From NCBI GenBank assembly GCA_010909165.1, contig VJWM01000280.1:62001-126000 (forward strand): a stretch of DNA of 64,000 nucleotides, read 5' to 3'. The notes under the pieces are model-generated. The model had not been told where the DNA came from. It was given only the letters and a program-made list of their open reading frames with translations, and did not search any database. Positions 1 to 63,110 of the stretch are shown in pieces (within the stretch, counting starts at the first letter, position 1; the number at the start of each line of letters is the position of its first letter). The position numbers were made by a program, and so were the translations under genes. The stretch is from Anthoceros angustus. Taxonomy: Eukaryota; Plantae; Anthocerotophyta.

Positions 1-1595
1 ATAATTAAAAAGTGGAATGTGTAGCCTTGAAATCGTTAACCCACGAGGGCTTTGGACAATGAGTGACTAAGCACAATGATTGTTTTTCAAACAAGAAAGG
101 ATTCCAGTGACCTTGAACCTTGACACCTTACGAGGGGCTTGTCCAATGTTTATGAATATATGTAAGTCGCATCCCTCATTTATATACCCAAGTTTTCCTT
201 GGCCCTTGGGAATCTTACGTGGAATTTTGCATCCCGAAACCCCCTAATTACCATGGGCCAAGGAACAATCATCCTTGGATTTCGTCATCCCCTTTTTTTC
301 CCCTTAAATTCGCCCCACTTCCTTCGAGGTTGATTCCGTCCTTGGACTTTGGCCTCACAAATTTTTCCACAAAGTTCTTCTTTCTCAGAACGCCGGGACG
401 CCAAGAGTCCGCTAGCCTACTTGCGCCTCGGGACGCCGGGAGTCTGCCGTCCTATTGGCGCACTCCCGGCACACCCGCAAGGCCAAGATGCACGGAGTCC
501 GTCGGCCTACCCGCACGATCGAGCCTCCCACTCCCCAATGCGACGTTCTCTCGGCCCACGGTTTAGGGTTATCGGGCCTACCACTCCCGAGTCGCCGTCC
601 TTTCGGCCCTCCGTGAGACTTCTCACCGGTGAGTGCACGATGGCATCGTGCAATCCCGACCAGAATCGGTGAAGCTTGAGAAACCGTTTTAATTTTTGAA
701 AGTGTTTCGTAGAAAGGGCCTATGTAAATTAGCCTACTTGTACCAAATATCAAAGGCTATCGCGGTCAAGCTATGTTGGAGCTTGAAATGACAACTTGCA
801 TGCGAGAAGGAAAACTGAAGTCAACCAAGAACAACCTTTAGACTAAACCACATCCTTGTAGGCGGTGAAAACCAAGCGTGGGATGAAAACAATCACTACT
901 ATTCAAGTTTTGAAAAGGGTGGAGACCCCATTAAAAGCGTTGAGCGTTTTTAGAGGACTTAACTTTCTCGAAGGAGAAGCTCTTTTGCCCACCAAAATTT
1001 TCAAACCTCCTAGGAGCAAAGATTTGCATAGTACTAAATTGCAATCAAGAATGTAGGTCGCTAGAATGAAGGTGGCGAGATAGTCTAAAATCTTATGTGA
1101 AACGAGTCATGTCCATGCACACGATGTTTGATTTAACGTAAGCAAAAATCTTGTCACTAAAGGGCGTGGACGAAGGTCTTTTTCCAATCCATGAAGTCCA
1201 TCGGCAAACCTTTAACTTTGCATGGTCGGGAGTGTGCATGAGTGTAAGTGTTGGGAATGCGTGTTGATGACCGTGGAATGCGATGCGGATGTATGGATGG
1301 GCGCGGGTCGGATGCATAGGATTCAAACATTGGATTAATGGAGGAGTCTCGGTCACGGCAGCTATGTCGACTATGTGCGACGCGACATACTCCTCACATC
1401 ATTCTTGGCACCCGGGACAAACATTTGACCCCTTGCTTCAAGCATAACAAATTGGCCGTCATAATGCACATCTATTGATACATTTAATTTTACGTAGTGA
1501 GAAAAAGTCACGACCATGCGCATGCTAGTATGTGAGCTCAAGCACACAGCTGAGCTATTTGATTGAAGGCAAGTTCACAACAGATAATCTAAGGC

Positions 1596-2541
1596 TCAAT
1601 TCGAGCTCTTCCAAACAAAAATTCCCACTTTGCAAAAACCATGCCGGTACTATAACGGATGCATGCGGACGCAAAAATCGGTAAGTGCTCTTGAGCGTAC
1701 TCACCGCCACATTACATCGTCGGCAATGCTCTTGAGCGAGCTGCAGTTCCCTCGAGATCTTCTGGACCATGTATATAACTCCGGTGACCGATCGTGGGAG
1801 CTTGGATATCGAATTTTGTTTTCCGAGGGCACTCACGGCTTGAAAGACAGCTCGCACTTCCTTGCGCATTTCGAGCTGGAACAAAAGCAGTCTTTGCAAA
1901 ATCCTTGGGCCGGATAGCTTTGGACGCGCACGGCGGATTTCCTCGGGTGCGCGGCTCGTCATGCACGGCCCTCATTTCTAGGAGGTCCACCAACTTCCCA
2001 ACAACCCCCTGGTCAAGGCTATAGCTGCGAGTACCCAAAGCCTCGTAGATTTCTTGCATTGACCGAGGAGTCCTTTCTTCTTTACAAGCCACGTACATAG
2101 CAGCAGCCACATACGTCTCTTCACAACTCCCTTTTCTCAAGACCCTCGCCTTCTTGTACAAGGAACTTGCCAATACCTGCGTGTTGTGCACAATTCTCAT
2201 TCTTTCTGCGAGCTCTGAAATCCTATCAAAGGCAGATATCAGGCTGCCGTCATGAGTGGGAACCCGTGCATTCGTGTTCCGCAGGTGTGGATGCAACCCA
2301 TTTTTCCTTGCGCTGTAGTGCGGATGCAAGTGGTTAGGCCAGCATGGTCGAGCAAGTCATCCGTGTCGTGGGGCGTCCCACACGCTCCTTCTCCTCGTGC
2401 TCGGTGTCATTATCGAACTTCCTATATTCCAAGGTTTCGTCGACACGACGTTCTTCTAACACTAGACCGCACTGCAAATGCTGCTCCACCTGTCCTCATA
2501 AATCTCTGTCTTTATCTTGCACTCTAGACATTTCACTCCAT
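1596..2541 (-). CDS. TFIIB: TFIIB-like transcription initiation factor, copy 1 (frameshifted as written)
   Basis: ORF 1712-2329 has SLISAFDRISELAERMRIV...AAAMYVACKEERTPRSMQEI (cyclin repeat 1) and AIRPKDF. ORF 1555-1962 has SVTGVIYMV...CNVAVSTLKSTYRFLRPHASVIVPAWF (repeat 2). Both match plant TFIIB motifs (LIQAF..I..M.ERL; AACLYIACRQE.KPRT.KEI; DF.RRFCS.L; SP.SIAA..IY; GVAEGTIRNSYK.L.P....I.P.W). Confidence 0.85.
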
Positions 2542-2732
2542 ATTCTCATGTCCGAGATAATTAAAAAGTGGAATGTGTAGCCTTGAAATCGTTAACCCAC
2601 GAGGGCTTTGGACAATGAGTGACTAAGCACAATGATTGTTTTTCAAACAAGAAAGGATTCCAGTGACCTTGAACCTTGACACCTTACGAGGGCTTGTCCA
2701 ATGTTTATGAATATATGTAAGTCGCATCCCTC

Positions 2733-2741
2733 ATTTATATA
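2733..2741 (-). promoter_or_regulatory. TATA-like box (TATATAAAT) ~190 nt upstream of the TFIIB ATG, present in each unit
   Basis: The plus strand reads CCCTCATTTATATACCC, i.e. minus GGGTATATAAATGAGGG. It is invariant in all copies and upstream of the ATG at 2541. Function is inferred. Confidence 0.5.
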
Positions 2742-7618: not shown

Positions 7619-9206
7619 ATTCTCCGTCCCGAGATAATTAAAAAGTGGAATGTGTAGCCTTGAAATCGTTAACCCACGAGGGCTTTGGACAATGAGTGAC
7701 TAAGCACAATGATTGTTTTTCAAACAAGAAAGGATTCCAGTGACCTTGAACCTTGACACCTTACGAGGGCTTGTCCAATGTTTATGAATATATGTAAGTC
7801 GCATCCCTCATTTATATACCCAAGTTTTCCTTGGCCCTTGGGAATCTTACGTGGAATTTTGCATCCGAAACCCCTAATTACCATGGGCCAAGGAACAATC
7901 ATCCTTGGATTTCGTCATCCCTTTTTTCCCCTTAAATTCCACTTCCTTCGAGGTTGATTCCGTCCTTGGACTTTGGCCTCACAAATTTTTCCACAAAGTT
8001 CTTCTTTCTCGAGCCGGACGCCAAGAGTCCGCTAGCCTACTTGCGCCCTCGGGACGCCGGAGTCTGCCGTCCTATTGGCGCACTCGGCACACCAAGGCCA
8101 AGATGCACGGAGTCCGTCGGCCTACCCGCGATCGAGCCTCCCACTCCCCAATGCGGCGTTCTCTCGGCCCACGGTTTAGGGTTATCGGGCCTACCACTCC
8201 CGAGTCGCCGTCCTTCGGCCCTCCGTGAGACTTCTCACCGGTGAGTGCACGATGGCGGTCGTGCAATCCCGACCAGAATCGTGAAGCTTGAGAAACCGTT
8301 TTAATTTTTGAAAGTGTTTCGTAGAAAGGGCCTATGTAAATTAGCCTACTTGTACCAAATATCAAAGGCTATCGCATCAAGCTATGTTGGAGCTTGAAAT
8401 GACAACTTGCATGCAGAGAAGGAAATCAAGTCAACCAAGAACAACCTTTAGACTAAACCACATCCTTGTAGGCGGTGAAAACCAAGCGTGGGATGAAAAC
8501 AATCACTACTATTCAAGTTTTGAAAAGGGTGGAGACCCCATTAAAAGCGTTGAGCGTTTTTAGAGGACTTAACTTTCTCGAAGGAGAAGCTCTTTTGCCC
8601 ACCAAAATTTTCAAACCTCCTAGGAGCAAAGATTTGCATAGTACTAAATTGCAATCAAGAATGTAGGTCGCTAGAATGAAGGTGGCGAGATAGTCTAAAA
8701 TCTTATGTGAAACGAGTCATGTCCATGCACACGATGTTTGATTTAACGTAAGCAAAAATCTTGTCACTAAAGGGCGTGGACGAAGGTCTTTTTCCAATCC
8801 ATGAAGTCCATCGGCAAACCTTTAACTTTGCATGGTCGGGAGTGTGCATGAGTGTAAGTGTTGGGAATGCGTGTTGACGATCGACCGTGGAATGCGATGC
8901 GGATGTATGGATGGGCGGGTCGGATGCATAGGATTCAAACATTGATTAATGGAGGGAGTCTCGGTCACGGCAGCTATGTCGACTATGTGCGACGCGACAT
9001 ACTCCTCACATCATTCTTGGCACCGGGGACAAACATTTGACCCCTTGCTTCAAAGAAGCATAACAAATTGGCCGTCATAATGCACATCTATTGATACATT
9101 GAATTTTACGTAGTGAGAAAAAGTCACGACCATGCATGCTAGTATGTGAGCACAAGCACACAGCTGAGCTATTTGATTGAAGGCAAGTTCACAGATAATC
9201 TAAGGC

Positions 9207-10016
9207 TCAATTCACGAGCTCTTCCAAACAAAAATTCCCACTTTGCAAAAACCATGCGGTACTATAACGGATGCATGCGGACGCAAAAATCGTAAGTGCT
9301 CTTTTGCCCACCAAAATTTTCAAACCTCCTAGGAGCAAAGATTTGCATAGTACTAAATTGCAATCAAGAATGTAGGTCGCTAGAATGAAGGTGGCGATAG
9401 TCTAAAATCTTATGTGAAACGAGTCATGTCCATGCACACGATGTTTGATTTAACGTAAGCAAAAATCTTGTCACTAAAGGGCGTGGACGACGAAGGTCTT
9501 TTTCCAATCCATGAAGTCCATCGGCAAACCTTTAACTTTGCATGGTCGGGAGTGTGCATGAGTGTAAGTGTTGGGAATGCGTGTTGACGATGCCGACCGT
9601 GGAATGCGATGCGGATGTATGGATGGGCGGGTCGGATGCATAGGATTCAAACATTGATTAATGGAGGGAGTCTCGGTCACGGCAGCTATGTCGACTATGT
9701 GCGACGCGACATACTCCTCACATCATTCTTGGCACCGGGGACAAACATTTGACCCCTTGCTTCAAAGAAGCATAACAAATTGGCCGTCATAATGCACATC
9801 TATTGATACATTGAATTTTACGTAGTGAGAAAAAGTCACGACCATGCATGCTAGTATGTGAGCACAAGCACACAGCTGAGCTATTTGATTGAAGGCAAGT
9901 TCACAACAGATAATCTAAGGCTCAATTCACGAGCTCTTCCAAACAAAAATTCCCACTTTGCAAAAACCATGCGGTACTATAACGGATGCATGCGGACGCA
10001 AAAATCGTAAGTGCTC
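9207..10016 (-). pseudogene. Two isolated TFIIB 3'-end fragments (9207-9302, 9922-10016) inside ~716-bp sub-duplications
   Basis: The last ~30 codons stop at GTAAGTGCTCTT, which continues into the spacer sequence GCTCTTTTGCCCACC. Confidence 0.75.
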
Positions 10017-10635
10017 TTTTGCCCACCAAAATTTTCAAACCTCCTAGGAGCAAAGATTTGCATAGTACTAAATTGCAATCAAGAATGTAGGTCGCTAGAA
10101 TGAAGGTGGCGATAGTCTAAAATCTTATGTGAAACGAGTCATGTCCATGCACACGATGTTTGATTTAACGTAAGCAAAAATCTTGTCACTAAAGGGCGTG
10201 GACGACGAAGGTCTTTTTCCAATCCATGAAGTCCATCGGCAAACCTTTAACTTTGCATGGTCGGGAGTGTGCATGAGTGTAAGTGTTGGGAATGCGTGTT
10301 GACGATGCCGACCGTGGAATGCGATGCGGATGTATGGATGGGCGCGGGTCGGATGCATAGGATTCAAACATTGATTAATGGAGGGAGTCTCGGTCACGGC
10401 AGCTATGTCGACTATGCGACGCGACATACTCCTCACATCATTCTTGGCACCCGGGACAAACATTTGACCCCTTGCTTCAAAGAAGCATAACAAATTTGGC
10501 CGTCATAATGCACATCTATTGATACATTTAATTTTACGTAGTGAGAAAAAGTCACGACCATCTTGCATGCTAGTATGTGAGCACAAGCACACAGCTATTT
10601 GATTGAAGGCAAGTTCACAACAGATAATCTAAGGC

Positions 10636-11565: not shown

Positions 11566-14500
11566 ATTCTCGGTCACGAGATAATTAAAAAGTGGAATGT
11601 GTAGCCTTGAAATCGTTAACCCACGAGGGCTTTGGACAATGAGTGACTAAGCACAATGATTGTTTTTCAAACAAGAAAGGATTCCAGTGACCTTGAACCT
11701 TGACACCTTACGAGGGCTTGTCCAATGTTTATGAATATATGTAAGTCGCATCCCTCATTTATATACCCAAGTTTTCCTTGGCCCTTGGGAATCTTACGTG
11801 GAATTTTGCATCCCGAAACCCCTAATTACCATGGGCCAAGGAACAATCATCCTTGGATTTCGTCATCCCTTTTTTCCCCTTAAATTCGCCCCACTTCCTT
11901 CGAGGTTGATTCCGTCCTTGGACTTTGGCCTCACAAATTTTTCCACAAAGTTCTTCTTTCTCGAACGCCGGACGCCAAGAGTCCGCTAGCCTACTTGCGC
12001 CTCGGGACGCCGGAGTCTGCCGTCCTATTGGCGCACTCCGGCACACCAAGGCCAAGATGCACGGAGTCCGCCGGCCTACCCGCACGATCGAGCCTCCCAC
12101 TCCCCAATGCGACGTTCTCTCGGCCCACGGTTTAGGGTTATCGGGCCTACCACGATCGAGCCTCCCACTCCCCAATGCGACGTTCTCTCGGCCCACGGTT
12201 TAGGGTTATCGGGCCTACCACTCCCGAGTCGCCGTCCTTCGGCCCTCCCGTGAGACTTCTCACCGGTGAGTGCATCGATGGCGGTGTCGTGCAATCCCGA
12301 CCAGAATCGGTGAAGCTTGAGAAACCGTTTTAATTTTTGAAAGTGTTTCGTAGAAAGGGCCTATGTAAATTAGCCTACTTGTACCAAATATCAAAGGCTA
12401 TCGCATCAAGCTATGTTGGAGCTTGAAATGACAACTTGCATGCGAGAAGGAAATCAAGTCAACCAAGAACAACCTTTAGACTAAACCACATCCTTGTAGA
12501 GGCGGTGAAAACCAAGCGTGGGATGAAAACAATCACTACTATTCAAGTTTTGAAAAGGGTGGAGACCCCATTAAAAGCGTTGAGCGTTTTTAGAGGACTT
12601 AACTTTCTCAAGGAGAAGCTCTTTTGCCCACCAAAATTTTCAAACCTCCTAGGAGCAAAGATTTGCATAGTACTAAATTGCAATCAAGAATGTAGGTCGC
12701 TAGAATGAAGGTGGCGATAGTCTAAAATCTTATGTGAAACGAGTCATGTCCATGCACACGATGTTTGATTTAACGTAAGCAAAAATCTTGTCACTAAAGG
12801 ACGTGGACGAAGGTCTTTTCAATCCATGAAGTCCATCGGCAAACCTTTAACTTTGCATGGTCGGGAGTGTGCATGAGTGTAAGTGTTGGGAATGCGTGTT
12901 GACGATGCCGACCGTGGAATGCGGCGTTCTCTCGGCCCACGGTTTAGGGTTATCGGGCCTACCACTCCCGAGTCGCCCGTCCTTCGGCCCTCCCGTGAGA
13001 CTTCTCACCGGTGAGTGCACGATGGCGGTATCGTGCAATCCCGACCAGAATCGGTGAAGCTTGAGAAACCGTTTTAATTTTTGAAAGTGTTTCGTAGAAA
13101 GGGCCTATGTAAATTAGCCTACTTGTACCAAATATCAAAGGCTATCGCATCAAGCTATGTTGGAGCTTGAAATGACAACTTGCATGCGAGAGAAGGAAAA
13201 GCGAAGTCAACCAAGAACAACCTTTAGACTAAACCACATCCTTGTAGAGGCGGTGAAAACCAAGCGTGGGATGAAAACAATCACTACTATTCAAGTTTTG
13301 AAAAGGGTGGAGACCCCATTAAAAGCGTTGAGCGTTTTTAGAGGACTTAACTTTCTCAAGGAGAAGCTCTTTTGCCCACCAAAATTTTCAAACCTCCTAG
13401 GAGCAAAGATTTGCATAGTACTAAATTGCAATCAAGAATGTAGGTCGCTAGAATGAAGGTGGCGATAGTCTAAAATCTTATGTGAAACGAGTCATGTCCA
13501 TGCACACGATGTTTGATTTAACGTAAGCAAAAATCTTGTCACTAAAGGACGTGGACGACGAAGGTCTTTTCAATCCATGAAGTCCATCGGCAAACCTTTA
13601 ACTTTGCATGGTCGGGAGTGTGCATGAGTGTAAGTGTTGGGAATGCGTGTTGACGGCCGACCGTGGAATGCGGCGTTCTCTCGGCCCACGGTTTAGGGTT
13701 ATCGGGCCTACCACTCCCGAGTCGCCCGTCCTTCGGCCCTCCCGTGAGACTTCTCACGGTGAGTGCACGATGGCGGTATCGTGCAATCCCGACCAGAATC
13801 GGTGAAGCTTGAGAAACCGTTTTAATTTTTGAAAGTGTTTCGTAGAAAGGGCCTATGTAAATTAGCCTACTTGTACCAAATATCAAAGGCTATCGCATCA
13901 AGCTATGTTGGAGCTTGAAATGACAACTTGCATGCAGAGAAGGAAAATCAAGTCAACCAAGAACAACCTTTAGACTAAACCACATCCTTGTAGAGGCGGT
14001 GAAAACCAAGCGTGGGATGAAAACAATCACTACTATTCAAGTTTTGAAAAGGGTGGAGACCCCATTAAAAGCGTTGAGCGTTTTTAGAGGACTTAACTTT
14101 CTCAAGGAGAAGCTCTTTTGCCCACCAAAATTTTCAAACCTCCTAGGAGCAAAGATTTGCATAGTACTAAATTGCAATCAAGAATGTAGGTCGCTAGAAT
14201 GAAGGTGGCGAGATAGTCTAAAATCTTATGTGAAGCGAGTCATGTCCATGCACACGATGTTTGATTTAACGTAAGCAAAAATCTTGTCACTAAAGGACGT
14301 GGACGACGAAGGTCTTTTCAATCCATGAAGTCCATCGGCGGCAAACCTTTAACTTTGCATGGTCGAGTGTGCATGAGTGTAAGTGTTGGGAATGCGTGTT
14401 GGATCTTGGCCGTGGAATGCGATGCGGATGTATGGATGGGCGCGGTCGGATGCATAGGATTCAAACATTGACAGTTAATGGAGGGAGTCTCGGTCACGGC

Positions 14501-14731
14501 AGCTATGTCGACTATGTGCGACGCGACATACTCCTCACATCATTCTTGGCACCCGGGACAAACATTTGACCCCTTGCTTCAAAGCATAACAAATTTGGCG
14601 TCATAATGCACATCTATTGATACATTGAATTTTACGTAGTGAGAAAAGTCACCGACCATGCATGCTAGTATGTGAGCACAAGCACACATGAGCTATTTGA
14701 TTGAAGGCAAGTTCACAAGATAATCTAAGGC

Positions 14732-15062: not shown

Positions 15063-15268
15063 ACATACTCCTCACATCATTCTTGGCACCGGGACAAACA
15101 TTTGACCCCTTGCTTCAAAGCATAACAAATTGGCCGTCATAATGCACATCTATTGATACATTTAATTTTACGTAGTGAGAAAAGTCACCGACCATGCATG
15201 CTAGTATGTGAGCACAAGCACACATGAGCTATTTGATTGAAGGCAAGTTCACGCGCATAATCTAAGGC

Positions 15269-16198
15269 TCAATTCACGAGCTCTTCCAAACAAAAATTCC
15301 CACTTTGCAAAAACCATGCGGTACTATAACGGATGCATGCGGACGCAAAAATCGGTAAGTGCTCTTGAGCGTACTCACCGCCACATTACATGCGTCGGCA
15401 ATGCTCTTGAGCGAGCCGCAGTTCCTCGAGATCTTCTGACCATGTATATAACTCCGGCGGTGACCGTGGGGAGCTTGGATATCAATTTTTGTTTTCCGAG
15501 GGCACTCACGGCTTGAAAGACAGCTCGCACTTCCTTGCGCATTTCGAGCTGGAACAAAGCAGTCTTGCAAAATCCTTGGGCGGATAGCTTTGGGCCGGCG
15601 GATTTCCTCGGGTCTGTGACTCGTCATGCACGGCCCTCATTTCTAGGAGGTCCACCAACTTCCCAACAACCCCTGGTCAAGGCTATAGCTGCAGTACCCA
15701 AAGCCTCGTAGATTTCTTGCATTGACCGAGGAGTCCTTTCTTCTTTACAAGCCACGTACATAGCAGCAGCCACATACGTCTCTTCACAACTCCCTTTTCT
15801 CAAGACCCTCGCCTTCTTGTACAAGGAACTTGCCAATACTGCGTGTTGTGCACAATTCTCATTCTTCTGCGAGCTCAAATCCTATCAAAGGCGGATATCG
15901 TGCCGTCATGAGTGGGAACCCGTGCATTCGTGTTCCGCAGTGTGGATGCAACCCATTTTTCCTTGCGCTGTAGTGCGGATGCAAGTGGTTAGGCCAGCAT
16001 GGTCGAGCAAGTCATCCGTGTCGTGGGGCGTCCCACACGCTCCTTCTCCTCGTGCTCGGTGTCATTATCGAACTTCCTATATTCCAAGGTTTCGTCGATC
16101 GACGTTCTTCTAACACTAGACCGCACTGCAAATGCATCTCGGACTGCTGTCCTCATAAATCTCTGTCTTTATCTTGCACTCTAGACATTTCACTCCAT
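15269..16198 (-). CDS. TFIIB: TFIIB-like copy 5
   Basis: ORF 15624-15878 has LASSLYKKARVLRKGSCEETYVAAAMYVACKEERTPRSMQEIYEAL. Both gene ends are present. Confidence 0.8.
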
Positions 16199-17802
16199 AT
16201 TCTCATGTCCCGAGATAATTAAAAAGTGGAATGTGTAGCCTTGAAATCGTTAACCCACGAGGGCTTTGGACAATGAGTGACTAAGCACAATGATTGTTTT
16301 TCAAACAAGAAAGGATTCCAGTGACCTTGAACCTTGACACCTTACGAGGGCTTGTCCAATGTTTATGAATATATGTAAGTCGCATCCTCATTTATATACC
16401 CAAGTTTTCCTTGGCCCTTGGGAATCTTACGTGGAATTTTGCATCCGAAACCCCTAATTACCATGGGCCAAGGAACAATCATCCTTGATTTCGTCATCCC
16501 CTTTTTTTCCCCCTTAAATTCGCCCCACTTCCTTGAGGTTGATTCCGTCCTTGGACTTTGGCCTCACAAATTTTTCCACAAAGTTCTTCTTTCTCGAGCC
16601 GGACGCCAAGAGTCCGCTAGCCTACTTGCGCCCTCGGGACGCCGGAGTCCGTCCTATTGGCGCACTCCGGCACACCCGCAAGGCCAAGATGCACGGAGTC
16701 CGCCGGCCTACCCGCACGATCGAGCCTCCCACTCCCCAATGCGACGTTCTCTCGGCCCACGGTTTAGGGTTATCGGGCCTACCACTCCCGAGTCGCCGTC
16801 CTTTCGGCCCTCCCGTGAGACTTCTCACGGTGAGTGCATCGATGGCGGTGTCGTGCAATCCCGACCAGAATCGGTGAAGCTTGAGAAACCGCTTTTAATT
16901 TTTGAAAGTGTTTCGTAGAAAGGGCCTATGTAAATTAGCCTACTTGTACCAAATATCAAAGGCTATCGCGGTCAAGCTATGTTGGAGCTTGAAATGACAA
17001 CTTGCATGCAGAGAAGGAAAATCAAGTCAACCAAGAACAACCTTTAGACTAAACCACATCCTTGTAGAGGCGGTGAAAACCAAGCGTGGGATGAAAACAA
17101 TCACTACTATTCAAGTTTTGAAAAGGGTGGAGACCCCATTAAAAGCGTTGAGCGTTTTTAGAGGACTTAACTTTCTCAAGGAGAAGCTCTTTTGCCCACC
17201 AAAATTTTCAAACCTCCTAGGAGCAAAGATTTGCATAGTACTAAATTGCAATCAAGAATGTAGGTCGCTAGAATGAAGGTGGCAGATAGTCTAAAATCTT
17301 ATGTGAAACGAGTCATGTCCATGCACACGATGTTTGATTTAACGTAAGCAAAAATCTTGTCACTAAAGGACGGACGACGAAGGTCTTTTTCAATCCATGA
17401 AGTCCATCGGCAAACCTTTAACTTTGCATGGTCGGGAGTGTGCATGAGTGTAAGTGTTGGGAATGCGTGTTGACGATCGACCGTGGAATGCGATGCGGAT
17501 GTATGGATGGGCGCGGGTCGGATGCATAGGATTCAAACATTGATGCTTAATGGAGGGAGTCTCGGTCACGGCAGCTATGTCGACTATGTGCGACGCGACA
17601 TACTCCTCACATCATTCTTGGCACCCGGGACAAACATTTGACCCCTTGCTTCAAAGCATAACAAATTTGGCGTCATAATGCACATCTATTGATACATTGA
17701 ATTTTACGTAGTGAGAAAAAGTCACGACCATGCTGCATGCTAGTATGTGAGCAAGCACACTGAGCTATTTGATTGAAGGCAAGTTCACAGATAATCTAAG
17801 GC

Positions 17803-18738: not shown

Positions 18739-20372
18739 ATTCTCTGTCACGAGATAATTAAAAAGTGGAATGTGTAGCCTTGAAATCGTTAACCCACGAG
18801 GGCTTTGGACAATGAGTGACTAAGCACAATGATTGTTTTTCAAACAAGAAAGGATTCCACAGTGACCTTGAACCTTGACACCTTACGAGGGCTTGTCCAA
18901 TGTTTATGAATATATGTAAGTCGATCCCTCATTTATATACCCAAGTTTTCCTTGGCCCTTGGGAATCTTACGTGGAATTTTGCATCCGAAACCCCTAATT
19001 ACCATGGGCCAAGGAACAATCATCCTTGGATTTCGTCATCCCTTTTTTCCCCTTAAATTCGCCCCACTTCCTTCGAGGTTGATTCCGTCCTTGGACTTTG
19101 GCCTCACAAATTTTTCCACAAAGTTCTTCTTTCTCGAACGCCGGACGCCAAGAGTCCGCTAGCCTACTTGCGCCTCGGACGCCGGAGTCTGCCGTCCTAT
19201 TGGCGCACTCCGGCACACCCGCAAGGCCAAGATGCACGGAGTCCGTCGGCCTACCCGCACGATCGAGCCTCCCACTCCCCAATGCGACGTTCTCTCGGCC
19301 CACGGTTTAGGGTTATCGGGCCTACCACTCCCGAGTCGCCGTCCTTCGGCCCTCCGTGAGACTTCTCACGGTGAGTGCATCGATGGCACCGTGCAATCCC
19401 GACCAGAATCGGTGAAGCTTGAGAAACCGCTTTTAATTTTTGAAAGTGTTTCGTAGAAAGGGCCTATGTAAATTAGCCTACTTGTACCAAATATCAAAGG
19501 CTATCGCATCAAGCTATGTTGGAGCTTGAAATGACAACTTGCATGCAGAGAAGGAAAACGAAGTCAACCAAGAACAACCTTTAGACTAAACCACATCCTT
19601 GTAGAGGCGGTGAAAACCAAGCGTGGGATGAAAACAATCACTACTATTCAAGTTTTGAAAAGGGTGGAGACCCCATTAAAAGCGTTGAGCGTTTTTAGAG
19701 GACTTAACTTTCTCTCAAGGAGAAGCTCTTTTGCCCACCAAAATTTTCAAACCTCCTAGGAGCAAAGATTTGCATAGTACTAAATTGCAATCAAGAATGT
19801 AGGTCGCTAGAATGAAGGTGGCGAGATAGTCTAAAATCTTATGTGAAACGAGTCATGTCCATGCACACGATGTTTGATTTAACGTAAGCAAAAATCTTGT
19901 CACTAAAGGACGGACGAAGGTCTTTTTCCAATCCATGAAGTCCATCGGCAAACCTTTAACTTTGCATGGTCGGGAGTGTGCATGAGTGTAAGTGTTGGGA
20001 ATGCGTGTTGTGCACAATTCTCATTCTTCTGCGAGCTCGAAATCCTATCAAAGGCGGATGTATGGATGGGCGCGGGTCGGATGCATAGGATTCAAACATT
20101 GATGATTAATGGAGGAGTCTCGGTCACGGCAGCTATGTCGACTATGTGCGACGCGACATACTCCTCACATCATTCTTGGCACCCGGGACAAACATTTGAC
20201 CCCTTGCTTCAAAGAAGCATAACAAATTTGGCGTCATAATGCACACGATCTATTGATACATTGAATTTTACGAGTGAGAAAAAGTCACCGACCATGCTGC
20301 ATGCTAGTATGTGAGCACAAGCACACTGAGCTATTTGATTGAAGGCAAGTTCACAACAAGATAATCTAAGGC

Positions 20373-35954: not shown

Positions 35955-36150
35955 TTTCTCTTTTCTAGGTTTCTTCCTCCTCTCTTCTCTTTTCTCTTTT
36001 CTCCTCTCTTGCTCCTTCCTTCTCCTCTCTTGCTCCCTATCCTCTCTAGCTCCTCTCGTCCTCTCTCGCTCTCACTCTCTCGCTCTCTCGCTCTCTTTTC
36101 TCTTTTCTCTTTTCTCCTCTCTTCTCTAATCTACCTCTTCCACTCTTCCT
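35955..36150 (+). repeat. CT-rich low-complexity tract
   Basis: Almost purely C/T. It shares CTTTTCTAGGTTTCTTCCTCCTCTC and TTGCTCCCTATCCTCTCTAGCTCCTCTC with 36750-36860. Confidence 0.8.
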
Positions 36151-38357: not shown

Positions 38358-38364
38358 CCGGTGG

Positions 38365-53699: not shown

Positions 53700-54480
53700 C
53701 TTGTGAACCTCCTCTCGTAGCGTAAACTTTCCGGACCTCACTGTCCGGACCTCAATCCTTCGGCCCGTTGGACCCATTTTGAATCCGTTTTCCTCCTTAC
53801 ATCACCGTCCGGTCGGGGGCTGCAAAATCTGTCCGCCCTTCTCAACTCACAACTTCTTGCTGTCTTCCGTCGATTACATTGGTGAAAAAGAAAAAGAAAA
53901 ATAAAACCTAACTAATATGAACAAAACTAAGAGGCATCCGCCTCTTCTAACCGTGGACCCAAAATTTGGTTCCACATGCCCCCTCCCACTTGTTTGCGTC
54001 CACGCAAACAACGGACTCAAAGTGAAAATACTTCTTGACCTTCCAGCCCATTCAGCGTCGATAGGGGGTCTCCATCAAGACTACGCTGGAATGAGACCCC
54101 ATTCTCCTTACCTCCTCAACCTTGTAGGGTCCCATCCACCTCAATCTCAACTTTCACTGGAAAATCTAAGTATCGGTCCGTCATCAAATCTCCAACAATC
54201 ACTTCTCTCTTTGAAGCTTCCCGTCATGTCGATGCTTCCGTTGTTCTTAGTTTTGTAGGTCTCCTCAAATTGCCTCTTCTCGGTCCTCCTCAGCCCAAAG
54301 TCGCGAAAGCCTCAATCCTGTGTTTATTTGTCCTCCACAGTCATCCTTACATCCTCCATGATTCGATGTGTTGGAATCTCAAACTCAATTAGTAACACTG
54401 GTGACATCCAGTAGGTCGGATAGTAGGCGTTCGTTTATGGTTACCTTCAGGCTGTCCGATATGCCCAAAGTCTTTGAATG
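53700..54480 (-). mobile_element. Non-array TE-like degenerate coding block (pieces also at 49488-49590, 50541-50810, 51890-51912, 52271-52750); tentatively LINE ORF1-like
   Basis: Exact shared segments across these sites. Minus-strand broken peptides FKDLGISDSLKVT, FEIPTH...DK.GFRDF and DFPVKVEIEVDG resemble plant LINE ORF1 only weakly. Confidence 0.3.
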
Positions 54481-57353
54481 AAGCTTGAGAAACCGTTTTA
54501 ATTTTTGAAAGTGTTTAGAAAGGGCCTATGTAAATTAGCCTACTTGTACCAAATATCAAAGGCTATCGCAAGCTATGTTGGAGCTTGAAATGACAACTTG
54601 CATGCAGAGAAGGAAAATCAAGTCAACCAAGAACAACCTTTAGACTAAACCACATCCTTGTAGAGGCGGTGAAAACCAAGCGTGGGATGAAAACAATCAC
54701 TACTATTCAAGTTTTGAAAAGGGTGGAGACCCCATTAAAAGCGTTGAGCGTTTTTTAGAGGACTTAACTTTCTCGAAGGAGAAGCTCTTTTGCCCACCAA
54801 AATTTTCAAACCTCCTAGGAGCAAAGATTTGCATAGTACTAAATTGCAATCAAGAATGTAGGTCGCTAGAATGAAGGTGGCGAGATAGTCTAAAATCTTA
54901 TGTGAAACGAGTCATGTCCATGCACACGATGTTTGATTTAACGTAAGCAAAAATCTTGTCACTAAAGGACGTGGACGACGAAGGTCTTTTTCAATCCATG
55001 AAGTCCATCGGCGGCAAACCTTTAACTTTGCATGGTCGGGAGTGTGCATGAGTGTAAGTGTTGGGAATGCGTGTTGACGATGCGGCCGTGGAATGCGATG
55101 CGGATGTATGGATGGGCGCGGTCGGATGCATAGGATTCAAACATTGATGCTTAATGGAGGGAGTCTCGGTCACGGCAGCTATGTCGACTATGTGCGACGC
55201 GACATACTCCTCACATCATTCTTGGCACCCGGGACAAACATTTGACCCCTTGCTGCTTCAAGCATAACAAATTTGGCGTCATAATGCACACGTCTATTGA
55301 TACATTGAATTTTACGTAGTGAGAAAAGTCACCGACCATGTTGCATGCTAGTATGTGAGCACGAAGCACACAGAGCTATTTGATTGAAGGCAAGTTCACG
55401 GCGCATAATCTAAGGCTCAATTCACGAGCTCTTCCAAACAAAAATTTTACTTGTATGTCGTCATCCCTTTTTTTCCCCCTTAAATTCGCCCACTTCCTTC
55501 GAGGTTGATTAGTCCTTGGACTTTGGCCTCACAAATTTTTCCACAAAGTTCTTCTTTCTCGAGCCGGACGCCAAGAGTCCGCTAGCCTACTTGCGCCCTC
55601 GGACGGAGTCTGCCGTCCTATTGGCGCACTCCGACACCCGCAAGGCCAAGATGCACGGAGTCCGCCGGCCTACCCGCACGATCGAGCCTCCCACTCCCCA
55701 ATGCGACGCTCTCGGCCCACGGTTTAGGGTTATCGGGCCTACCACTCCCGAGTGCGCCGTCCTTTCGGCCCTCCCGTGAGACTTCTCACCGGTGAGTGCA
55801 CGATGTCGTGCAATCCCGACCAGAATCGTGAAGCTTGAGAAACCGTTTTAATTTTTGAAAGTGTTTAGAAAGGGCCTATGTAAATTAGCCTACTTGTACC
55901 AAATATCAAAGGCTATCGCAAGCTATGTTGGAGCTTGAAATGACAACTTGCATGCAGAGAAGGAAAATCAAGTCAACCAAGAACAACCTTTAGACTAAAC
56001 CACATCCTTGTAGAGGCGGTGAAAACCAAGCGTGGGATGAAAACAATCACTACTATTCAAGTTTTGAAAAGGGTGGAGACCCCATTAAAAGCGTTGAGCG
56101 TTTTTTAGAGGACTTAACTTTCTCAAGGAGAAGCTCTTTTGCCCACCAAAATTTTCAAACCTCCTAGGAGCAAAGATTTGCATAGTACTAAATTGCAATC
56201 AAGAATGTAGGTCGCTAGAATGAAGGTGGCGAGATAGTCTAAAATCTTATGTGAAACGAGTCATGTCCATGCACACGATGTTTGATTTAACGTAAGCAAA
56301 AATCTTGTCACTAAAGGACGTGGACGACGAAGGTCTTTTCCAATCCATGAAGTCCATCGGCAAACCTTTAACTTTGCATGGTCGGGAGTGTGCATGAGTG
56401 TAAGTGTTGGGAATGCGTGTTGACGATGCCGACTGGAATGCGATGCGGATGTATGGATGGGCGCGGTCGGATGCATAGGATTCAAACATTGGCTTAATGG
56501 AGGAGTCTCGGTCACGGCAGCTATGTCGACTATGTGCGACGCGACATACTCCTCACATCATTCTTGGCACCGGGACAAACATTTGACCCCTTGCTTCAGA
56601 AGCATAACAAATTTGGCCATAATGCACATCTATTGATACATTGAATTTTACGTAGTGAGAAAAGTCACCGACCATGTTGCATGCTAGTATGTGAGCACGA
56701 AGCACACAGCTGAGCTATTTGATTGAAGGCAAGTTCACAACAGATAATCTAAGGCTCAATTCGAGCTCTTCCAAACAAAAATTCCCACTTTGCAAAAACC
56801 ATGCCGGTACTATAACGGATGCATGCGGACGCCAAGAGTCCGCTAGCCTACTTGTACCAAATATCAAAGGCTATCGCATCAAGCTATGTTGGAGCTTGAA
56901 ATGACAACTTGCATGCGACGCGACATACTCCTCACATCATTCTTGGCACCCGGGACAAACATTTGACCTTGAACCTTGACACCTTACGAGGGCTTGTCCA
57001 ATGTTTATGAATATATGTAAGTGTTGGGAATGCGTGTTGACGTCTTCGTGGAATGCGATGCGGATGTATGGATGGGCGCGGTCGGATGCATAGGATTCAA
57101 ACATTGGCTTAATGGAGGAGTCTCGGTCACGGCAGCTATGTCGACTATGTGCGACGCGACATACTCCTCACATCATTCTTGGCACCGGGACAAACATTTG
57201 ACCCCTTGCAGCATAACAAATTGTCATAATGCACACGTCTATTGATACATTGAATTTTACGTAGTGAGAAAAGTCACATGCATGCTAGTATGTGAGCACA
57301 AGCACACAAGCTGAGCTATTTGATTGAAGGCAAGTTCACACATAATCTAAGGC

Positions 57354-58250
57354 TCAATTCACGAGCTCTTCCAAACAAAAATTCCCACTTTGCAAAAACC
57401 ATGCCGGTACTATAACGGATGCATGCGACAATCTGGTAAGTGCTCTTGAGCGTACTCACCGCCACATTACATGCGTCGGCAATGCTCTTGAGCGCACTTC
57501 CCTCGAGATCTTACCATGTATATAACTCCGCCCTGACCGGCTGTGAGCTTGGATATCGAATTTTTGTTTTCCGAGGGCACTCACAACGAAGACAGCTCTG
57601 ACTTTCCTTGCGCATTTCGAGCTGGAACAAAATAGTCGCAAAATCCTTGGGCGGATAGCTTTGACGCGACGGCGGATTTCCTCGGTCTGTGACTGTCATG
57701 CACGGCCCTCATTTCTAGGAGGTCCACCAACTTCCGTCAAGGCTATAGCTGCAGTACCCAAAGCCTCGTAGATTTCTTGCATTGACCGAGGAGTCCTTTC
57801 TTCTTTACAAGCCACGTACATAGCAACACATACGTCTCTTCACAACTCCCTTTTCTCAAGACCCTCGCCTTCTTGTACAAGGAACTTGCCAATACCGCGT
57901 GTTGTGCACAATTCTCATTCTTTCTGCGAGCTCGAAATCCTATCAAAGGCGGATATCATTGCCGTCATGAGTGGGAACCCGTGCATTCGTGTTCCATGGT
58001 GTGGATGCAACCCATTTTCCTTTGCGCGCCAGTGCGGATGCAAGTGGTTAGGCCAGCATGGTCGAGCAAGTCATCCGTGTAATGGGACGTCCCACACGCT
58101 CCTTCTCCTCGTGCTGGTGTCATTATCGAACTTCCTATATTCCAAGGTTTTCGATCGACGTTCTTCTAACACTAGACCGCACTGCAAATGCTGTCTCGGC
58201 TGTCCTCATAAATCTGTCTTTATCTTGCACTCTAGACATTTCAGCTCCAT
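57354..58250 (-). CDS. TFIIB: TFIIB-like copy 13 (many indels)
   Basis: Full-length homologous interval from ATGGAGCTGAAATGT to GTGAATTGA; see ORFs 57456-57641 and 57743-57946. Confidence 0.7.
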
Positions 58251-58550
58251 ATTCTCGGTCTGAGATAATTAAAAAGTGGAATGTGTAGCCTTCAAATCGT
58301 TAACCCACGAGGGCTTTGGACAATGAGTGACTAAGCACAATGATTGTTTTTCAAACAAGAAAGGATTCCAGTGACCTTGAACCTTGACACCTTACGAGGG
58401 CTTGTCCAATGTTTATGAATATATGTAAGTCGCATCCCTCATTTATATACCCAAGTTTTCCTTGGCCCTTGGGAATCTTACGTGGAATTTTGCATCCGAA
58501 ACCCCTAATTACCATGGGCCAAGGAACAATCATCCTTGGATTTCGTCATC

Positions 58551-58655
58551 CTTCCTTATTTGCCTCCGCCTCTACCATCTTAGTGCGATGTCGGTGGCCA
58601 CCAATATGTGCTTAGGAGTCCACAGGTGGAGGTGGGCGAATCGGCCCAACCAATC
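58551..58655 (-). mobile_element. ~100-bp Ty3/Gypsy integrase core fragment
   Basis: The minus strand, with frameshifts, reads D.VGPIRPP...KHILVATD..TKMVEAEA, matching the integrase motif DFVGPI.P....KYILVATDY.TKWVEA.A. Confidence 0.6.
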
Positions 58656-59249
58656 AATTCCCACTTTGCAAAAACCATGCCGGTACTATAACGGATGCAT
58701 GCGGACGCAAAATCTTATGTGAAACGAGTCATGTCCATGCACACGATGTTTGATTAATGGAGGGAGTCTGCCGTCCTATTGGCGCACTCCCAATGCGACG
58801 CGACATACTCCTCACATCATTCTTGGCACCCGGGACAAACATTTGACCTTGAACCTTGACACCTTACGAGGGCTTGTCCAATGTTTATGAATATATGTAA
58901 GTGTTGGGAATGCGTGTTGATCGCGACCGTGGAATGCGATGCGGATGTATGGATGGGCGCGGTCGGATGCATAGGATTCAAACATTGATGCTTAATGGAG
59001 GGAGTCTCGTCAAGTAGTTTATGTCGACTATGTGCGACATACTCCTCACATCATTCTTGGCACCCGGGACAAACATTTGACCCCTTGCTTCAAAGCATAA
59101 CAAATTTGGCGTCATAATGCACATGCCTATTGATACATTGAATTTTACGTAGTGAGAAAAGTCACCGACCATGTTGCATGCTAGTATGTGAGCTCAAGCA
59201 CATAAATTGAGCTATTTGATTGAAGGCAAGTTCACAGATAATCTAAGGC

Positions 59250-60146
59250 TCAATTCACGAGCTCTTCCAAACAAAAATTCCCACTTTGCAAAAACCATGC
59301 CGGTACTATAACGGATGCATGCGGAAAAATCGGTAAGTGCTCTTGGCGTACTCACCGCCACATTACATGCGCAATGCTCTTGAGCGAGTTTGCACGGTTC
59401 CCTCGAGATCTTCTGCACCATGTATATAACTCCGCGGTGACCGATCGTGGGAGAGCTTGGATATCGAATTTTTGTTTTCCGAGGGCACTCCTTGAAAGCC
59501 TCGTGACTTTCCTTGCGCATTTCGAGCTGGAACAAAATCGCAAAATCCTTGGGCGGATAGCTTTGACGCGACGGCGGATTTCGTCATCCCTCATTTCTAG
59601 GAGGTCCACCAACTTCCCAACAACCCCCTGGTCAAGGCTATAGCTGCAGTACCCAAAGCCTCGTAGATTTCTTGCATTGACCGAGGAGTCCTTTCTTCTT
59701 TACAAGCCACGTACATAGCAGGCACATACGTCTCTTCACAACTCCCTTTTCTCAAGACCCTCGCCTTCTTGTACAAGGAACTTGCCAATACCGTGTTGTG
59801 CACAATTCTCATTCTTTCTGCGAGCTCGAAATCCTATCAAAGGCGTATATCGTCCGTCATGAGTGGGAACCCGTGCATTCGTGTTCCGCGGTGTGGATGC
59901 AACCCATTTTCCTTTGCGTGCGGATGCAAGTGGTTAGGCCAGCATGGTCGAGCAAGTCATCCGGTCGTGGACGTCCCACACGCTCCTTCTCCTCGTGCTC
60001 GGTGTCATTATCGAACTTCCTATATTCCAAGGTTTTCGCCGACACGACGTTCTTCTAACACTAGACCGCACTCTGCAAATGCCGCCTGCACTGCTGTCCT
60101 CATAAATCTCTGTCTTTATCTTGCACTCTAGACATTTCAGCTCCAT
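59250..60146 (-). CDS. TFIIB: TFIIB-like copy 14 (last near-full copy)
   Basis: ORF 59934-60146 starts MELKCLECKIKTEIYEDSSAGGIC. ORF 59597-59812 carries repeat 1. Confidence 0.75.
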
Positions 60147-61482
60147 ATTCTCGGCTGTCCTGAGATAATTAAAAAAGTGGAATGTGTAGCCTTGAAATCG
60201 TTAACCCACTAGGGCTTTGGACAATGAGTGACTAAGCACAATGATTGTTTTTCAAACAGTAAAGGATTCCACAGTGACCTTGAACCTTGACACCTTACGA
60301 GGGCTTGTCCAATGTTTATGAATATATGTAAGTCGCATCCCTCATTTATATACCCAAGTTTTCCTTGGCCCTTGGGAATCTTACGTGGAATTTTGCATCC
60401 GAAACCCCTAATTACCATGGGCCAAGGAACAATCATCCTTGGATTTCGTCATCCCTTTTTTCCCCTTAAATTCGCCCCACTTCCTTGAGGTTGATTAGTC
60501 CTTGGACTTTGGCCTCACAAATTTTTCCACAAAGTTCTTCTTTCTCGAGCCGGACGCCAAGAGTCCGCTAGCCTACTGCGCTCGGACGCCGGAGTCTGCC
60601 GTCCTATTCCACCGGACACCAAGGCCAAGATGCACGGAGTCCGTCGGCCTACCCGCACGATCGAGCCTCCCACTCCCCAATGCGACGCTCTCGGCCCACG
60701 GTTTAGGGTTATCGGGCCTACCACTCCCGAGTGCCGTCCTTTCGGCCCTCCCGTGAGACTTCTCACCGGTGAGTGCATCGATGGCATGCGTGCAATCCCG
60801 ACCAGAATCGTGAAGCTTGAGAAACCGTTTTAATTTTTGAAAGTGTTTCGTAGAAAGGGCCTATGTAAATTAGCCTACTTGTCCAATGTTTATGAATATA
60901 TGTAAGTCGCATCCCTCATTTATATACCCAAGTTTTCCTTGGCCCTTGGGAATCTTACGTGGAATTTTGCATCCGAAACCCCTAATTACCATGGGCCAAG
61001 GAACAATCATCCTTGGATTTCGTCATCCCTCATTTATATACCCAAGTTTTCCTTGGCCCTTGGGAATCTTACGTGGAATTTTGCATCCGAAACCCCTAAT
61101 TACCATGGGCCAAGGAACAATCATCCTTGGATTTCGTCATCCCTTTTTTCCCCTTAAATTCGCCCCACTTCCTTGAGGTTGATTCCGTCCTTGGACTTTG
61201 GCCTCACAAATTTTTCCACAAAGTTCTTCTTTCTCGAGCTCTTCCAAACAAAAATTCCCACTTTGCAAAAACCATGCGGTGAAGCTTGAGGTGAGCTTAA
61301 AAAATTTCGGTGAGGTTTCGTGTATCTTGACCTTGAACCTTGACACCTTACGAGGGCTTGTCCAATGTTTATGAATATATGTAAGTGTTGGGAATGCGTG
61401 TTGTGCACAATTCTCATTCTTTCTGCGAGCTCGAAATCCTATCAAAGGCTATCGCATCAAGCTATGTTGGAGCTTGAAATGA

Positions 61483-61725
61483 CCACGCCATCGATCCACT
61501 ATGACACCGACACTCCGTGGACTTGACCTCCACGATCCTCGCGCGTATACTGCTGGCTGGAGTGCCGAGAGTGTCATTTGTTTGGCGTTGAAGATGGCAG
61601 GAATCCCAGGCGCAGGTTGCTGAAGCAGGCAAGCCATTGCGATGGCCTGCGATCTGTCGCAATGTGTATGAGGGCCCGTGGCCGTCGGCGGCTGACGGGC
61701 TGTCTGCTCGTCAACCCGTCGGCGG
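61483..61725 (-). mobile_element. Ty3/Gypsy integrase C-terminal fragment (moss/algal type)
   Basis: ORF 61462-61662 has HLQRQTNDTLGTPASSIRARIVEVKS, like the moss Gypsy motif YLQRQPNDTL...ILRI (recalled, not searched). It is a diverged nucleotide homolog of 63885-64000. Confidence 0.6.
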
Positions 61726-62039
61726 CCTACCCGCACGATCGAGCCTCCCACTCCCCAATGCGACGCGACATACTCCTCACATCATTCTTGGCACCCGGGA
61801 CAAACATTTGACCTTGAACCTTGACACCTTACGAGGGCTTTGGACAATGAGTGACTAAGCACAATGATTGTTTTTCAAACCTCCTAGGAGCAAAGATTTG
61901 CATAGTACTAAATTGCAATCAAGAATGTAGGTCGCTAGAATGAAGGTGGCGATAGTCTAAAATCTTATGTGAAACGAGTCATGTCCATGCACGGCCCTCA
62001 TTTCTAGGAGGTCCACCAACTTCCCAACAACCCCTGGTC

Positions 62040-63110
62040 AATTAGTGCCATCAGCGGTCTTGGAATTCCCTAGGAATTACAGACCTTGGTCGGTGAGACA
62101 CTCGCGCAGCGCCAGCGGCTCGGCGTTACGCAGAAAACTGTGATGTGCTCTGGATGACATGGAACAGCGCAGCGGCCTCCACCACTTGCTAAAGTGCTCT
62201 ATCATCACCAAGATGTACCGTTACCTTGGTGTCTTAGGCGGCTCTCCTATGAGGTCGCGGGACCACGAAGAAGAGCCCCATGATGGGGAGTGGAGTGCGG
62301 CTACAGGTGCTGCATAGTGAAGGATGTTTTGTGGCGGTCACATGGCTCCTGACAAGCGACACATTCCGGACTTGTGCATGCATGCCAAACCCGGATTGAT
62401 GAGGGGGCGATAATTGTAGGTCCTCTTGACTCCAAAATGCCCCATGTCATCATGTACTCTTGAATGAGATATTACACGATCTCCGGGAGGTGGAACCGTT
62501 CCACACCATGGGCCTCTCGGATGAGGTACCCATCTCTCCAGTAGTAGGCAGCAGCACGTTCATGCCACGCTCACGAGCTTTGCTCCAATCTTCACCTAGG
62601 CGGCGGTTGCACAAAGCGTTATGCGTCCTCCCATATGTCCTTGGGGACATGTTGAGCTGCTGCAACCTCAAGCTGTCCAAGGCATGTCATGGCCACCAAG
62701 GCAGCTCTGACCGTCTGCACATCCTCGTGGCTGATCATCCTCATCCTCATCCTCATCCTCAATGTGTGTGGTGGCGTGGCGCACCTCGGTGCAAATATCT
62801 GAATCAAAGGGCTGCCTACGGGCTGCACAGGTTGGTAATCCATGACCTGCCGCGGCACCCACACACATTACGTCGTTACGGGCCACATGCACACCAAAAC
62901 CTTGCATTCATAATCCAGCAACACCGCGGTTTTGCGTGAGTCTCAGCAACATTCCTTTCCACGGACTTCGACAACTGGTTGTTGCAGCTGCCATCGCCGA
63001 TCTTGAGGTCTTGGCCGCCATCATGAGCAAGCACCTCCTCTCGGTGTGATGAGGCCACCACCTCGCATGATCCTTGGCCGTTGCAGCAGCGGGCTTCATG
63101 ATGTAGCCCA
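62040..63110 (-). mobile_element. Degenerate Ty3/Gypsy pol: RNase H-integrase linker, HHCC zinc-binding domain and integrase core start
   Basis: Frameshifted minus-strand peptides: DIWED...YYWRDG.LIR...LIQEY(H)DDMGHFGVKRTY...CDRHKTSF...LHS.PIMG...DLIGEPPKTPR.RYILVMIEHFSKW...ECLTDQG...ALID. These match bryophyte/algal Gypsy integrases (GHFGVKRTY; LHPLPIMG; MIEHFSKW; ECLTDQG). Confidence 0.85.

Follow-up and report, generated by a model that had tools for sequence, protein, structure and literature searches.

The 64,000-nucleotide stretch of the hornwort Anthoceros angustus genome considered here (contig VJWM01000280.1 of assembly GCA_010909165.1, positions 62,001 to 126,000 of the forward strand; hereafter the window, whose own numbering is used throughout) is occupied from position 1 to 62,041 by a tandem array of a gene related to the transcription initiation factor TFIIB. 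We consider it probable that the array is a high-copy macrosatellite of near-identical, methylated and silenced units, each carrying a TATA element and a divergent, intronless TFIIB-like gene, and that the breaks in the assembled gene copies are mostly base-calling errors. General initiation factors are normally low-copy, and full-text literature searches returned no described TFIIB macrosatellite or tandem array, in line with what a preliminary description of the window, made from the sequence alone, had stated. The array would be the first macrosatellite form of the TFIIB family, with tens of near-identical genes, each with its own TATA box, and would offer, in a plant, a tractable example of a transcription-factor array under epigenetic silencing and possibly released at a particular stage.

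Self-comparison of the window by BLAST revealed direct repeats only, arranged head to tail at a modal offset of 2,550 bp, and no inverted self-matches. From base 1 up to ~62,040 the sequence has a median multiplicity of 19-23, and the final 2 kb are unique. When the window was mapped onto a canonical reference unit of 2,536 bp, 24 unit starts were found, all in one orientation and with the TFIIB-like gene on the minus strand. Base 1 corresponds to unit position 991, that is, to mid-unit, and the array therefore extends further left. Both the count of at least 19 head-to-tail units and the leftward continuation given in the preliminary description are thus borne out. Only 5 of the 23 intervals between unit starts have the canonical length of 2,520-2,566 bp, the others being altered by an internal 755-bp duplication, deletions, unrelated inserts or patchwork. 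The units are well above 1 kb, run head to tail and each hold a coding span and a promoter element of their own, as befits a gene-bearing macrosatellite. The features on which this description rests are as follows.

1 to 62041, minus strand: tandem array of ~2.54-kb units with 24 starts, cut within a unit at base 1 (self-BLAST and unit walk).
15225 to 17760, minus strand: canonical reference unit, 2,536 bp, with 3' flank, coding sequence (CDS) span, promoter region and ~1.4 kb of spacer (unit walk; neighbouring canonical intervals 2,520-2,566 bp).
15269 to 16198, minus strand: CDS span of the canonical unit, ATG at 16198, last base of the TGA at 15269, frameshifted as assembled (context mapping).
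16391 to 16398, minus strand: TATATAAA box ~200 nt upstream of the ATG (context GGGTATATAAATGAGG).
Minus strand, further CDS spans by context mapping, given as ATG/stop: 2541/1596, 5091/4145, 7618/6696, 11565/10636, 18738/17803.
Minus strand, likewise: 21311/20373, 24586/23656, 26213/25274, 30248/29322.
Minus strand, likewise: 32782/31843, 34421/33478, 58250/57354, 60146/59250.

In all, 17 ATG contexts and 24 stop contexts were located, and they delimit 14 ATG-to-stop spans of 897-947 nt, matching the 14 near-full copies reported earlier. The TATATAAA box, in the context GGGTATATAAATGAGG, recurs in 21 units, each time ~203 nt upstream of the ATG, so that the TATA-like box of the preliminary description is a regular part of the unit. 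Introns are absent, since three in-frame pieces, described below, tile colinearly on canonical TFIIB. The frame changes many times within every assembled copy, a feature that the preliminary description overlooked together with the likelihood that the breakage is mostly assembly noise. Near the right end of the array, at 60910-61144, 114 bp are perfectly duplicated in tandem; the duplication includes the TATATAAA context and thereby yields two TATA contexts (60929 and 61043).

The family to which the encoded protein belongs is evident from the stretches that remain open. Three of these, taken from three different copies, are of particular use.

32274 to 32717, minus strand: in-frame piece A, 148 aa, covering the second knuckle of the zinc ribbon, the B-reader, the B-linker and the first cyclin repeat (PF00382, E 2e-6).
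1712 to 2329, minus strand: in-frame piece B, a 205-aa open reading frame (ORF) covering the B-linker and the first cyclin repeat and running into the inter-repeat linker (PF00382, 38.8 bits).
20209 to 20778, minus strand: in-frame piece C, a 189-aa ORF covering the inter-repeat linker, the second cyclin repeat and the C-terminal tail (PF00382, 35.3 bits).

The Pfam TFIIB repeat PF00382, with a cut-off of 23.6 bits, recognises cyclin repeat 1 in piece B (E 9.6e-10) and cyclin repeat 2 in piece C (positions 4-90 of 92), which upholds the TFIIB homology proposed earlier. When piece A was run by HMMER, exhaustively, against 1.84 billion representatives, it matched canonical or divergent eukaryotic TFIIBs only (best E 1.3e-15, at most 38% identity) and nothing close. 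The best solved structure for piece A is human TFIIB (E 1.7e-13), piece C matches the TFIIB core in the PDB at E 5e-6, and only TFIIB/TFB chains, with no BRF or Rrn7 chain, appear among the PDB matches at E up to 0.01. The CDS moreover stops right behind the second cyclin repeat, without the long C-terminal extension that membership of the BRF (Pol III) or Rrn7/TAF1B/MEE12 (Pol I) groups would entail.

Joined as unmodified in-frame translations, with identical residues wherever they overlap, the three pieces form a tile of 294 aa, whose residues 2-284 align colinearly with residues 27-300 of streptophyte TFIIBs (33-36% identity, E ~1e-44). The alignments extend from end to end and take in the B-reader and B-linker, which connect the ribbon with the core. 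TFIIB of Marchantia polymorpha is 38% identical to each half and has the same C-terminal PHAS..P.WF motif, seen in the tail of piece C in the plant-type form PHAS..VP.WF. A stop-free path traced by dynamic programming through the observed alleles reached 306-310 codons; it ran in the wrong frame in places and was uninformative, and the three-piece tile replaced it.

In a maximum-likelihood tree with canonical plant TFIIBs, whose branches measure 0.003-0.3, the array protein remains unplaced on a long branch of 2.42. An orthologous, canonical TFIIB would hardly combine this branch length with 33-38% identity and at least 14 CDS spans in the window alone. The likeness to the canonical plant proteins (of M. 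polymorpha, and Arabidopsis TFIIB1/2) nevertheless extends to the domain order, colinearity, the E-x-R-x-F and RVG-x-P motifs of the B-reader, both cyclin repeats and the C-terminal PHAS..P.WF, whereas the identity of 33-38%, the branch of 2.42 against 0.003-0.012 for liverwort TFIIBs, the intronless and multicopy state of the gene and a third zinc ligand that reads as His or is illegible set the array protein apart. Overall, membership of the TFIIB family is clear, the protein is very divergent, and the PHAS..P.WF motif, as a feature of sequence, argues for a plant origin.

With the 205-aa ORF as the query, a word-indexed protein search found no match at E 0.001 or better, the divergence of the protein being too great for 5-mers to be shared. 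A viral origin was considered, given that the ESM Atlas clusters nearest to piece A include TFIIB-repeat proteins of Nucleocytoviricota (giant viruses); their scores of 0.88-0.89 fall short of the lead threshold of 0.9, and the streptophyte-type C-terminal motif and the eukaryotic top matches disfavour such an origin. Among the best matches are divergent TFIIB-likes from Oryza, Ranunculus, Oxalis and Turnera. In Ranunculus cassubicifolius two of them, with locus tags 027364 and 027365, are adjacent and near-identical, which shows that such genes can be duplicated in tandem on a small scale in angiosperms.

The zinc ribbon is the least legible part of the protein.

30045 to 30248, minus strand: the sole copy that keeps one frame from its ATG across the zinc ribbon and into the B-reader (MELKCLECK...HLQCGLVLEERR), with ligands CxxC...HxxC (translation).

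This ribbon, in the copy with its ATG at 30248, scores 18.3 bits on Zn_Ribbon_TF (PF08271), and a half ribbon scores 21.2 bits, against a cut-off of 29. Of the Pfam check suggested in the preliminary description, the TFIIB repeat hence passes twice and the ribbon falls below the cut-off (18.3-21.2 bits). The site of the third zinc ligand coincides with a CAG/CG error hot spot of the kind described next.

Two accounts of the broken frames need to be weighed: that they are largely errors of the consensus, or that the array is a dead heterochromatic satellite of truly decayed TFIIB pseudogenes, descended from a TFIIB retrocopy and carrying real frameshifts. The nature of the differences between copies speaks for the former. 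Pairs of copies are ~94-96% identical, and in every pair gap openings exceed mismatches by about 2:1. The differences cluster in ~100 hot spots, and the intervening blocks are identical in all copies. A CG or CHG cytosine is found no more than 2 nt from 80% of the variable positions and from 81-83% of events, compared with 38% of all positions, an association with z = 7.3 by circular shift. By base context, the variable share is 66% for CAG/CTG, 28% for CG, 12% for CHH and 10% for A/T. Conversely, divergence in the 1,203 columns more than 3 nt away from CG/CHG or gaps is 0-0.3% among the 11 core copies and 0.4-0.8% for the two edge copies; the true units are probably near-identical.

Other sources of such differences were considered and set aside. 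Random long-read error was rejected on the clustering in hot spots, and homopolymer error on the lack of any homopolymer enrichment among the variable positions. Deamination of 5-methylcytosine (5mC) was rejected on the excess of indels and on a transition to transversion ratio of ~1 (101 transitions and 107 transversions between copies, with frequent C<->G exchanges).

The unique flank provides a control outside the array.

62042 to 64000, no strand assigned: non-array flank, control for assembly error (multiplicity, contig coverage).

Independent contigs differ from the window at 33 places here, of which 85% are no more than 2 nt from CG/CHG (background 44%), and both the short-read and the RNA contigs read CAG/CTG where the window shows, for example, ACA, CGA or GTAC. 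The same CG/CWG errors thus appear against independent contigs in the flank, so that the mistakes of the window consensus at CG/CWG are not restricted to the array. Between the RNA contigs at 62776-63404 and the window there are 18 substitutions and 23 gaps, most of them at CG/CWG.

Short reads of the DNA lead to the same view. Two dominant array unitigs (depths 337 and 436) match about half of the window copies exactly, and the rest differ from them almost only by 1-3 single-base indels. The fraction of 31-mers of 29200-34600 that is found in the DNA run, estimated by sampling, is 0.32, and 0.33 of them occur in at least 15 window copies. Of the four near-empty 200-bp bins, three are made of copy-specific 31-mers and have a depth of 0-5, and the fourth falls within the 114-bp duplication.

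CG and CHG are the contexts of maintenance methylation in plants. Nanopore base-callers are known to err at 5mC, and under default models ~70% of the consensus errors are reported to have fallen in CC(A/T)GG motifs (PMC6591954). In Marchantia CG/CHG methylation is heavy in repeats and on the sex chromosomes, whereas genes in vegetative tissue have little of it (PMC5784723). We infer that the frameshifts are mostly long-read base-calling errors at methylated cytosines, and the context-bound error pattern would in turn imply dense CG/CHG methylation of the array. The apparent pseudogenisation and copy divergence would then largely be a CG/CWG-bound base-calling artefact, which doubles as an indirect methylation map and should be discounted when pseudogenes or frameshifts are called on this assembly.

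Several observations weigh against this explanation. No assembled copy is open from ATG to stop, and the longest ORF in the window has 206 aa; the intronless CDS of ~945 nt described earlier therefore stands as a span of 897-947 nt, though not as an open frame of ~315 codons. The majority consensus of 13 copies is still frameshifted, which fits systematic errors common to many copies rather than random ones. A frame-blind rule that takes the CG/CWG-richest allele gives an open stretch of 169 aa, compared with 126 aa for the majority and 109 aa for the opposite rule, and no full ORF. Short haplotype blocks are common to non-adjacent copies, so that part of the variation may be real. The motif CLEC...HLQC is readable, yet four Cys stand in one frame in no copy, the third ligand reading as His or being illegible, and a shared, genuine defect of the zinc ribbon is possible. 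Both the sequencing platform and the methylation are deduced rather than directly observed. Finally, the depths reported here come from Logan contigs, which lose rare variants and whose depth is not a copy number, and the RNA evidence comes from one run, compared only with the right edge of the array, 58,001-62,041.

The broken copies, the frameshifted majority consensus, the silence of the array in the RNA run and the higher divergence of the edge copies even at clean sites (0.4-0.8%) are all as a dead satellite would have them. The breaks, on the other hand, are confined to CG/CHG contexts, are dominated by indels with a transition to transversion ratio near 1, and leave 0-0.3% divergence elsewhere; errors of the same type occur in the flank against independent contigs; the short reads lack the copy-specific 31-mers; and each break is missing from at least one copy, with three copies tiling 294 codons in frame. 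Genuine decay is hence an unlikely explanation of the array. Given the silenced macrosatellite that we favour, the underlying units probably have one common, possibly intact, reading frame.

It could also be asked whether the array exists at such length in the genome, or whether it stems from over-expansion during assembly or from rolling-circle or extrachromosomal-circle reads of a locus with one or two copies. Near-identical units are easily mis-sized in a noisy assembly, and the patchwork segments with their 3-9-bp overlaps could be chimeric consensus. The preliminary description had proposed that a read depth of ~1-2 copies would mark the array as an artefact. Single, independent short-read unitigs on the array have depths of 337-436, against 7-46 in the flank, which excludes a locus of one or two copies; summed contig depth on the array is ~130-1,000 per bin, the short-read depth being roughly 10-50x that of the flank. 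Moreover, variants of the unit come back with identical junctions, unrelated sequence is inserted between the units, and the array has a defined border with its flank. An artefact of this kind is very improbable.

The expression of the array bears on its possible function. RNA contigs from the same sample have a depth of 0 on the right edge of the array, including one whole CDS span, in one run whose tissue is not stated, while they reach a depth of 164-244 on the flank at 62776-63404. This RNA-covered stretch of the flank holds no Pfam-recognisable ORF. The dosage-amplified, stage-specific or selfish initiation factor envisaged in the preliminary description accordingly finds no support in these depths. 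Dense CG/CHG methylation, moreover, is typical of repeats under silencing and not of an active gene of the housekeeping type. Together, the probable methylation and the silence in RNA favour a silenced macrosatellite over an active, dosage-amplified factor.

Nonetheless, an active role deserves to be weighed, in which a TFIIB variant would be supplied at high dosage for initiation, either constitutively or in a stage-bound manner, for example in gametogenesis, and may compete with canonical TFIIB. The consensus TATA box is kept ~200 nt upstream in each unit, and the complete domain architecture bespeaks long-term coding constraint. Plants have divergent TFIIB-like paralogues with roles in reproduction, such as BRP4 and BRP5/PTF2 (PMC4036515, PMC10671200, PMC7865254). 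Yet the array has no contig coverage in the sample's RNA run, the implied dense CG/CHG methylation would span promoter and gene body, the branch length of 2.4 far exceeds the 0.003-0.3 of canonical TFIIBs, and the zinc ribbon stays under the Pfam threshold. Since the copies are near-identical, an open frame is also uninformative on current selection. An active amplified factor therefore appears rather doubtful to us.

A precedent for activity may be sought in the liverworts. Okada and colleagues are said to have described, in 2001, ORF162 on the V (Y) chromosome of Marchantia polymorpha, reportedly a sex-linked gene for a RING-finger protein expressed in male organs. ORF162 resembles the array in being a protein-coding gene with many copies inside kilobase tandem repeats in heterochromatin, in that case of a liverwort, and differs in its RING-finger product, sex linkage and expression in male organs. 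This male-expressed, repeat-embedded gene is a point in favour of an active factor. It is named in PMC9261002.

How, then, could such an array have arisen? Each ~2.54-kb unit would comprise the TATATAAA promoter element, an intronless minus-strand gene of ~318 codons and ~1.4 kb of spacer, and the encoded protein is predicted to have a zinc ribbon, a B-reader/linker and two cyclin repeats. A copy of plant TFIIB may have shed its introns by retroposition, evolved fast under coding constraint, and been amplified recently or kept homogeneous by ongoing unequal crossing-over, a process that could also account for the 755-bp duplications within units and for the degeneration of the right edge. That coding constraint lasted until recently is argued by the absence of any stop from the 294 homology-defined codons, which are ~35% identical to the parent family. 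Base-calling errors at methylated CG and CHG, chiefly CAG/CTG, would explain most of the ~6% apparent divergence as well as the frameshifts, and dense CG/CHG methylation across promoter and gene body would place the array in silenced heterochromatin in the sequenced, probably vegetative, tissue.

Alternatively, the TFIIB-like gene could be cargo of a retrotransposon, made into an array by, for example, tandem formation of long terminal repeat (LTR)-internal-LTR structures. The gene is intronless, the array appears to be methylated as repeats are, and Gypsy elements lie just outside the window. LTR-retrotransposon cargo would be expected to come with LTR termini, a primer-binding site, a polypurine tract and gag/pol remnants. 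In the unit, however, no primer-binding site occurs within 2 mismatches of four common tRNA primers, its purine runs are short (11-16 nt) with no long polypurine tract by the repeat border, the ORFs of spacer and insert lack any Pfam transposon domain, and no sequence is common to array and flank. We regard a transposon origin as decidedly unlikely and return to the retroposed and tandemly amplified gene as the preferred history.

Two groups of known systems lend themselves to comparison with the array. The plant TFIIB-likes BRP1/pBrp, BRP2, BRP4 and BRP5/PTF2 are likewise lineage-specific, divergent paralogues, several of them of reproductive stages (PMC7865254, PMC4036515, PMC10671200); unlike the array, they are single or low-copy and dispersed, and none has been described as a macrosatellite. 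It is in this dispersed form that plants are known to expand TFIIB-like factors (PMC7865254).

The second group is that of animal macrosatellites such as D4Z4/DUX4, TSPY and CT47. The unit of promoter plus intronless transcription-factor gene agrees with the D4Z4/DUX4-like architecture proposed in the preliminary description, and the likeness includes kilobase units in head-to-tail order, a single intronless transcription-factor ORF that is probably retro-derived, and degenerate edges. The animal arrays are methylated and silent in ordinary tissue, to which the methylation suggested here by CG/CHG-bound errors, and the silence in the RNA run, would correspond. They differ in belonging to another kingdom, in encoding a homeobox or testis gene instead of a general initiation factor, and in that both CG and CHG contexts are involved here. 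By analogy with DUX4, or with ORF162 in the repeats of the Marchantia V chromosome, a stage-specific release of the array is possible. In its fullest form, the analogy would make the array a plant counterpart of D4Z4/DUX4, with dozens of intact, near-identical copies of a rapidly evolving TFIIB variant that are CG/CHG-silenced in vegetative tissue and released in a narrow window (spermatogenesis, zygote or spore), there redirecting or competing for TBP/RNA polymerase II at a special set of promoters, or acting selfishly. This is a speculative proposal, and we hold it to be improbable as a whole.

The remaining features concern variation within the array and towards its edge.

12151 to 14687, no strand assigned: 755-bp sub-repeat (unit positions 1514-2268) in three tandem copies with 6-bp overlaps (unit walk).
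38358 to 40420, no strand assigned: non-array insert, 54% G+C, pyrimidine-rich on the plus strand, partly duplicated at ~36.0-37.3 kb (no domain recognised).
53702 to 54478, no strand assigned: further non-array insert (unit walk).
56700 to 62041, minus strand: right edge of the array, with two more divergent copies (57312 and 59208) and a patchwork of 47-320-bp unit pieces (copy comparison, unit walk).

The 755-bp tandem duplication of unit positions 1514-2268 is recurrent, its junction being seen again at 22593, 27498 and 28241, and every join has the 6-bp overlap. A recurrent deletion spans unit positions ~1408 to ~2330. Jumps within the unit share breakpoints with 3-9-bp overlaps (142->1962; 2268->1514) and are located in 9165-10592, 12151-14687, 22593-23609 and 27498-29279; they could be either real higher-order variants or consensus chimeras.

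Unrelated sequence interrupts the array at ~36.0-37.3 kb, 38.36-40.42 kb and 53.7-54.5 kb. The insert at 38358-40420 has a GC skew of -0.24, and its long plus-strand ORFs translate to low-complexity sequence with no domain match. Rfam and tRNA scans of the window gave no RNA genes, and a Pfam scan of the ORFs of spacer, insert and flank gave no match.

Toward the right edge, unit pieces of 47-320 bp form a patchwork. Mosaics of 47-67-bp pieces, 100% identical to the unit, occur at 35400-35960, 56840-57020, 58640-58900 and 61230-62041, and the order of their pieces is constant (2365-2419, 1098-1156, 2225-2536), three times complete and a fourth time without the last piece. Perfect tandem duplications of 68-71 bp are found in the spacer (unit ~1481-1560) at 12083-12221 and 35466-35649, and these hold a single plant telomere-like GGTTTAGGGTT.

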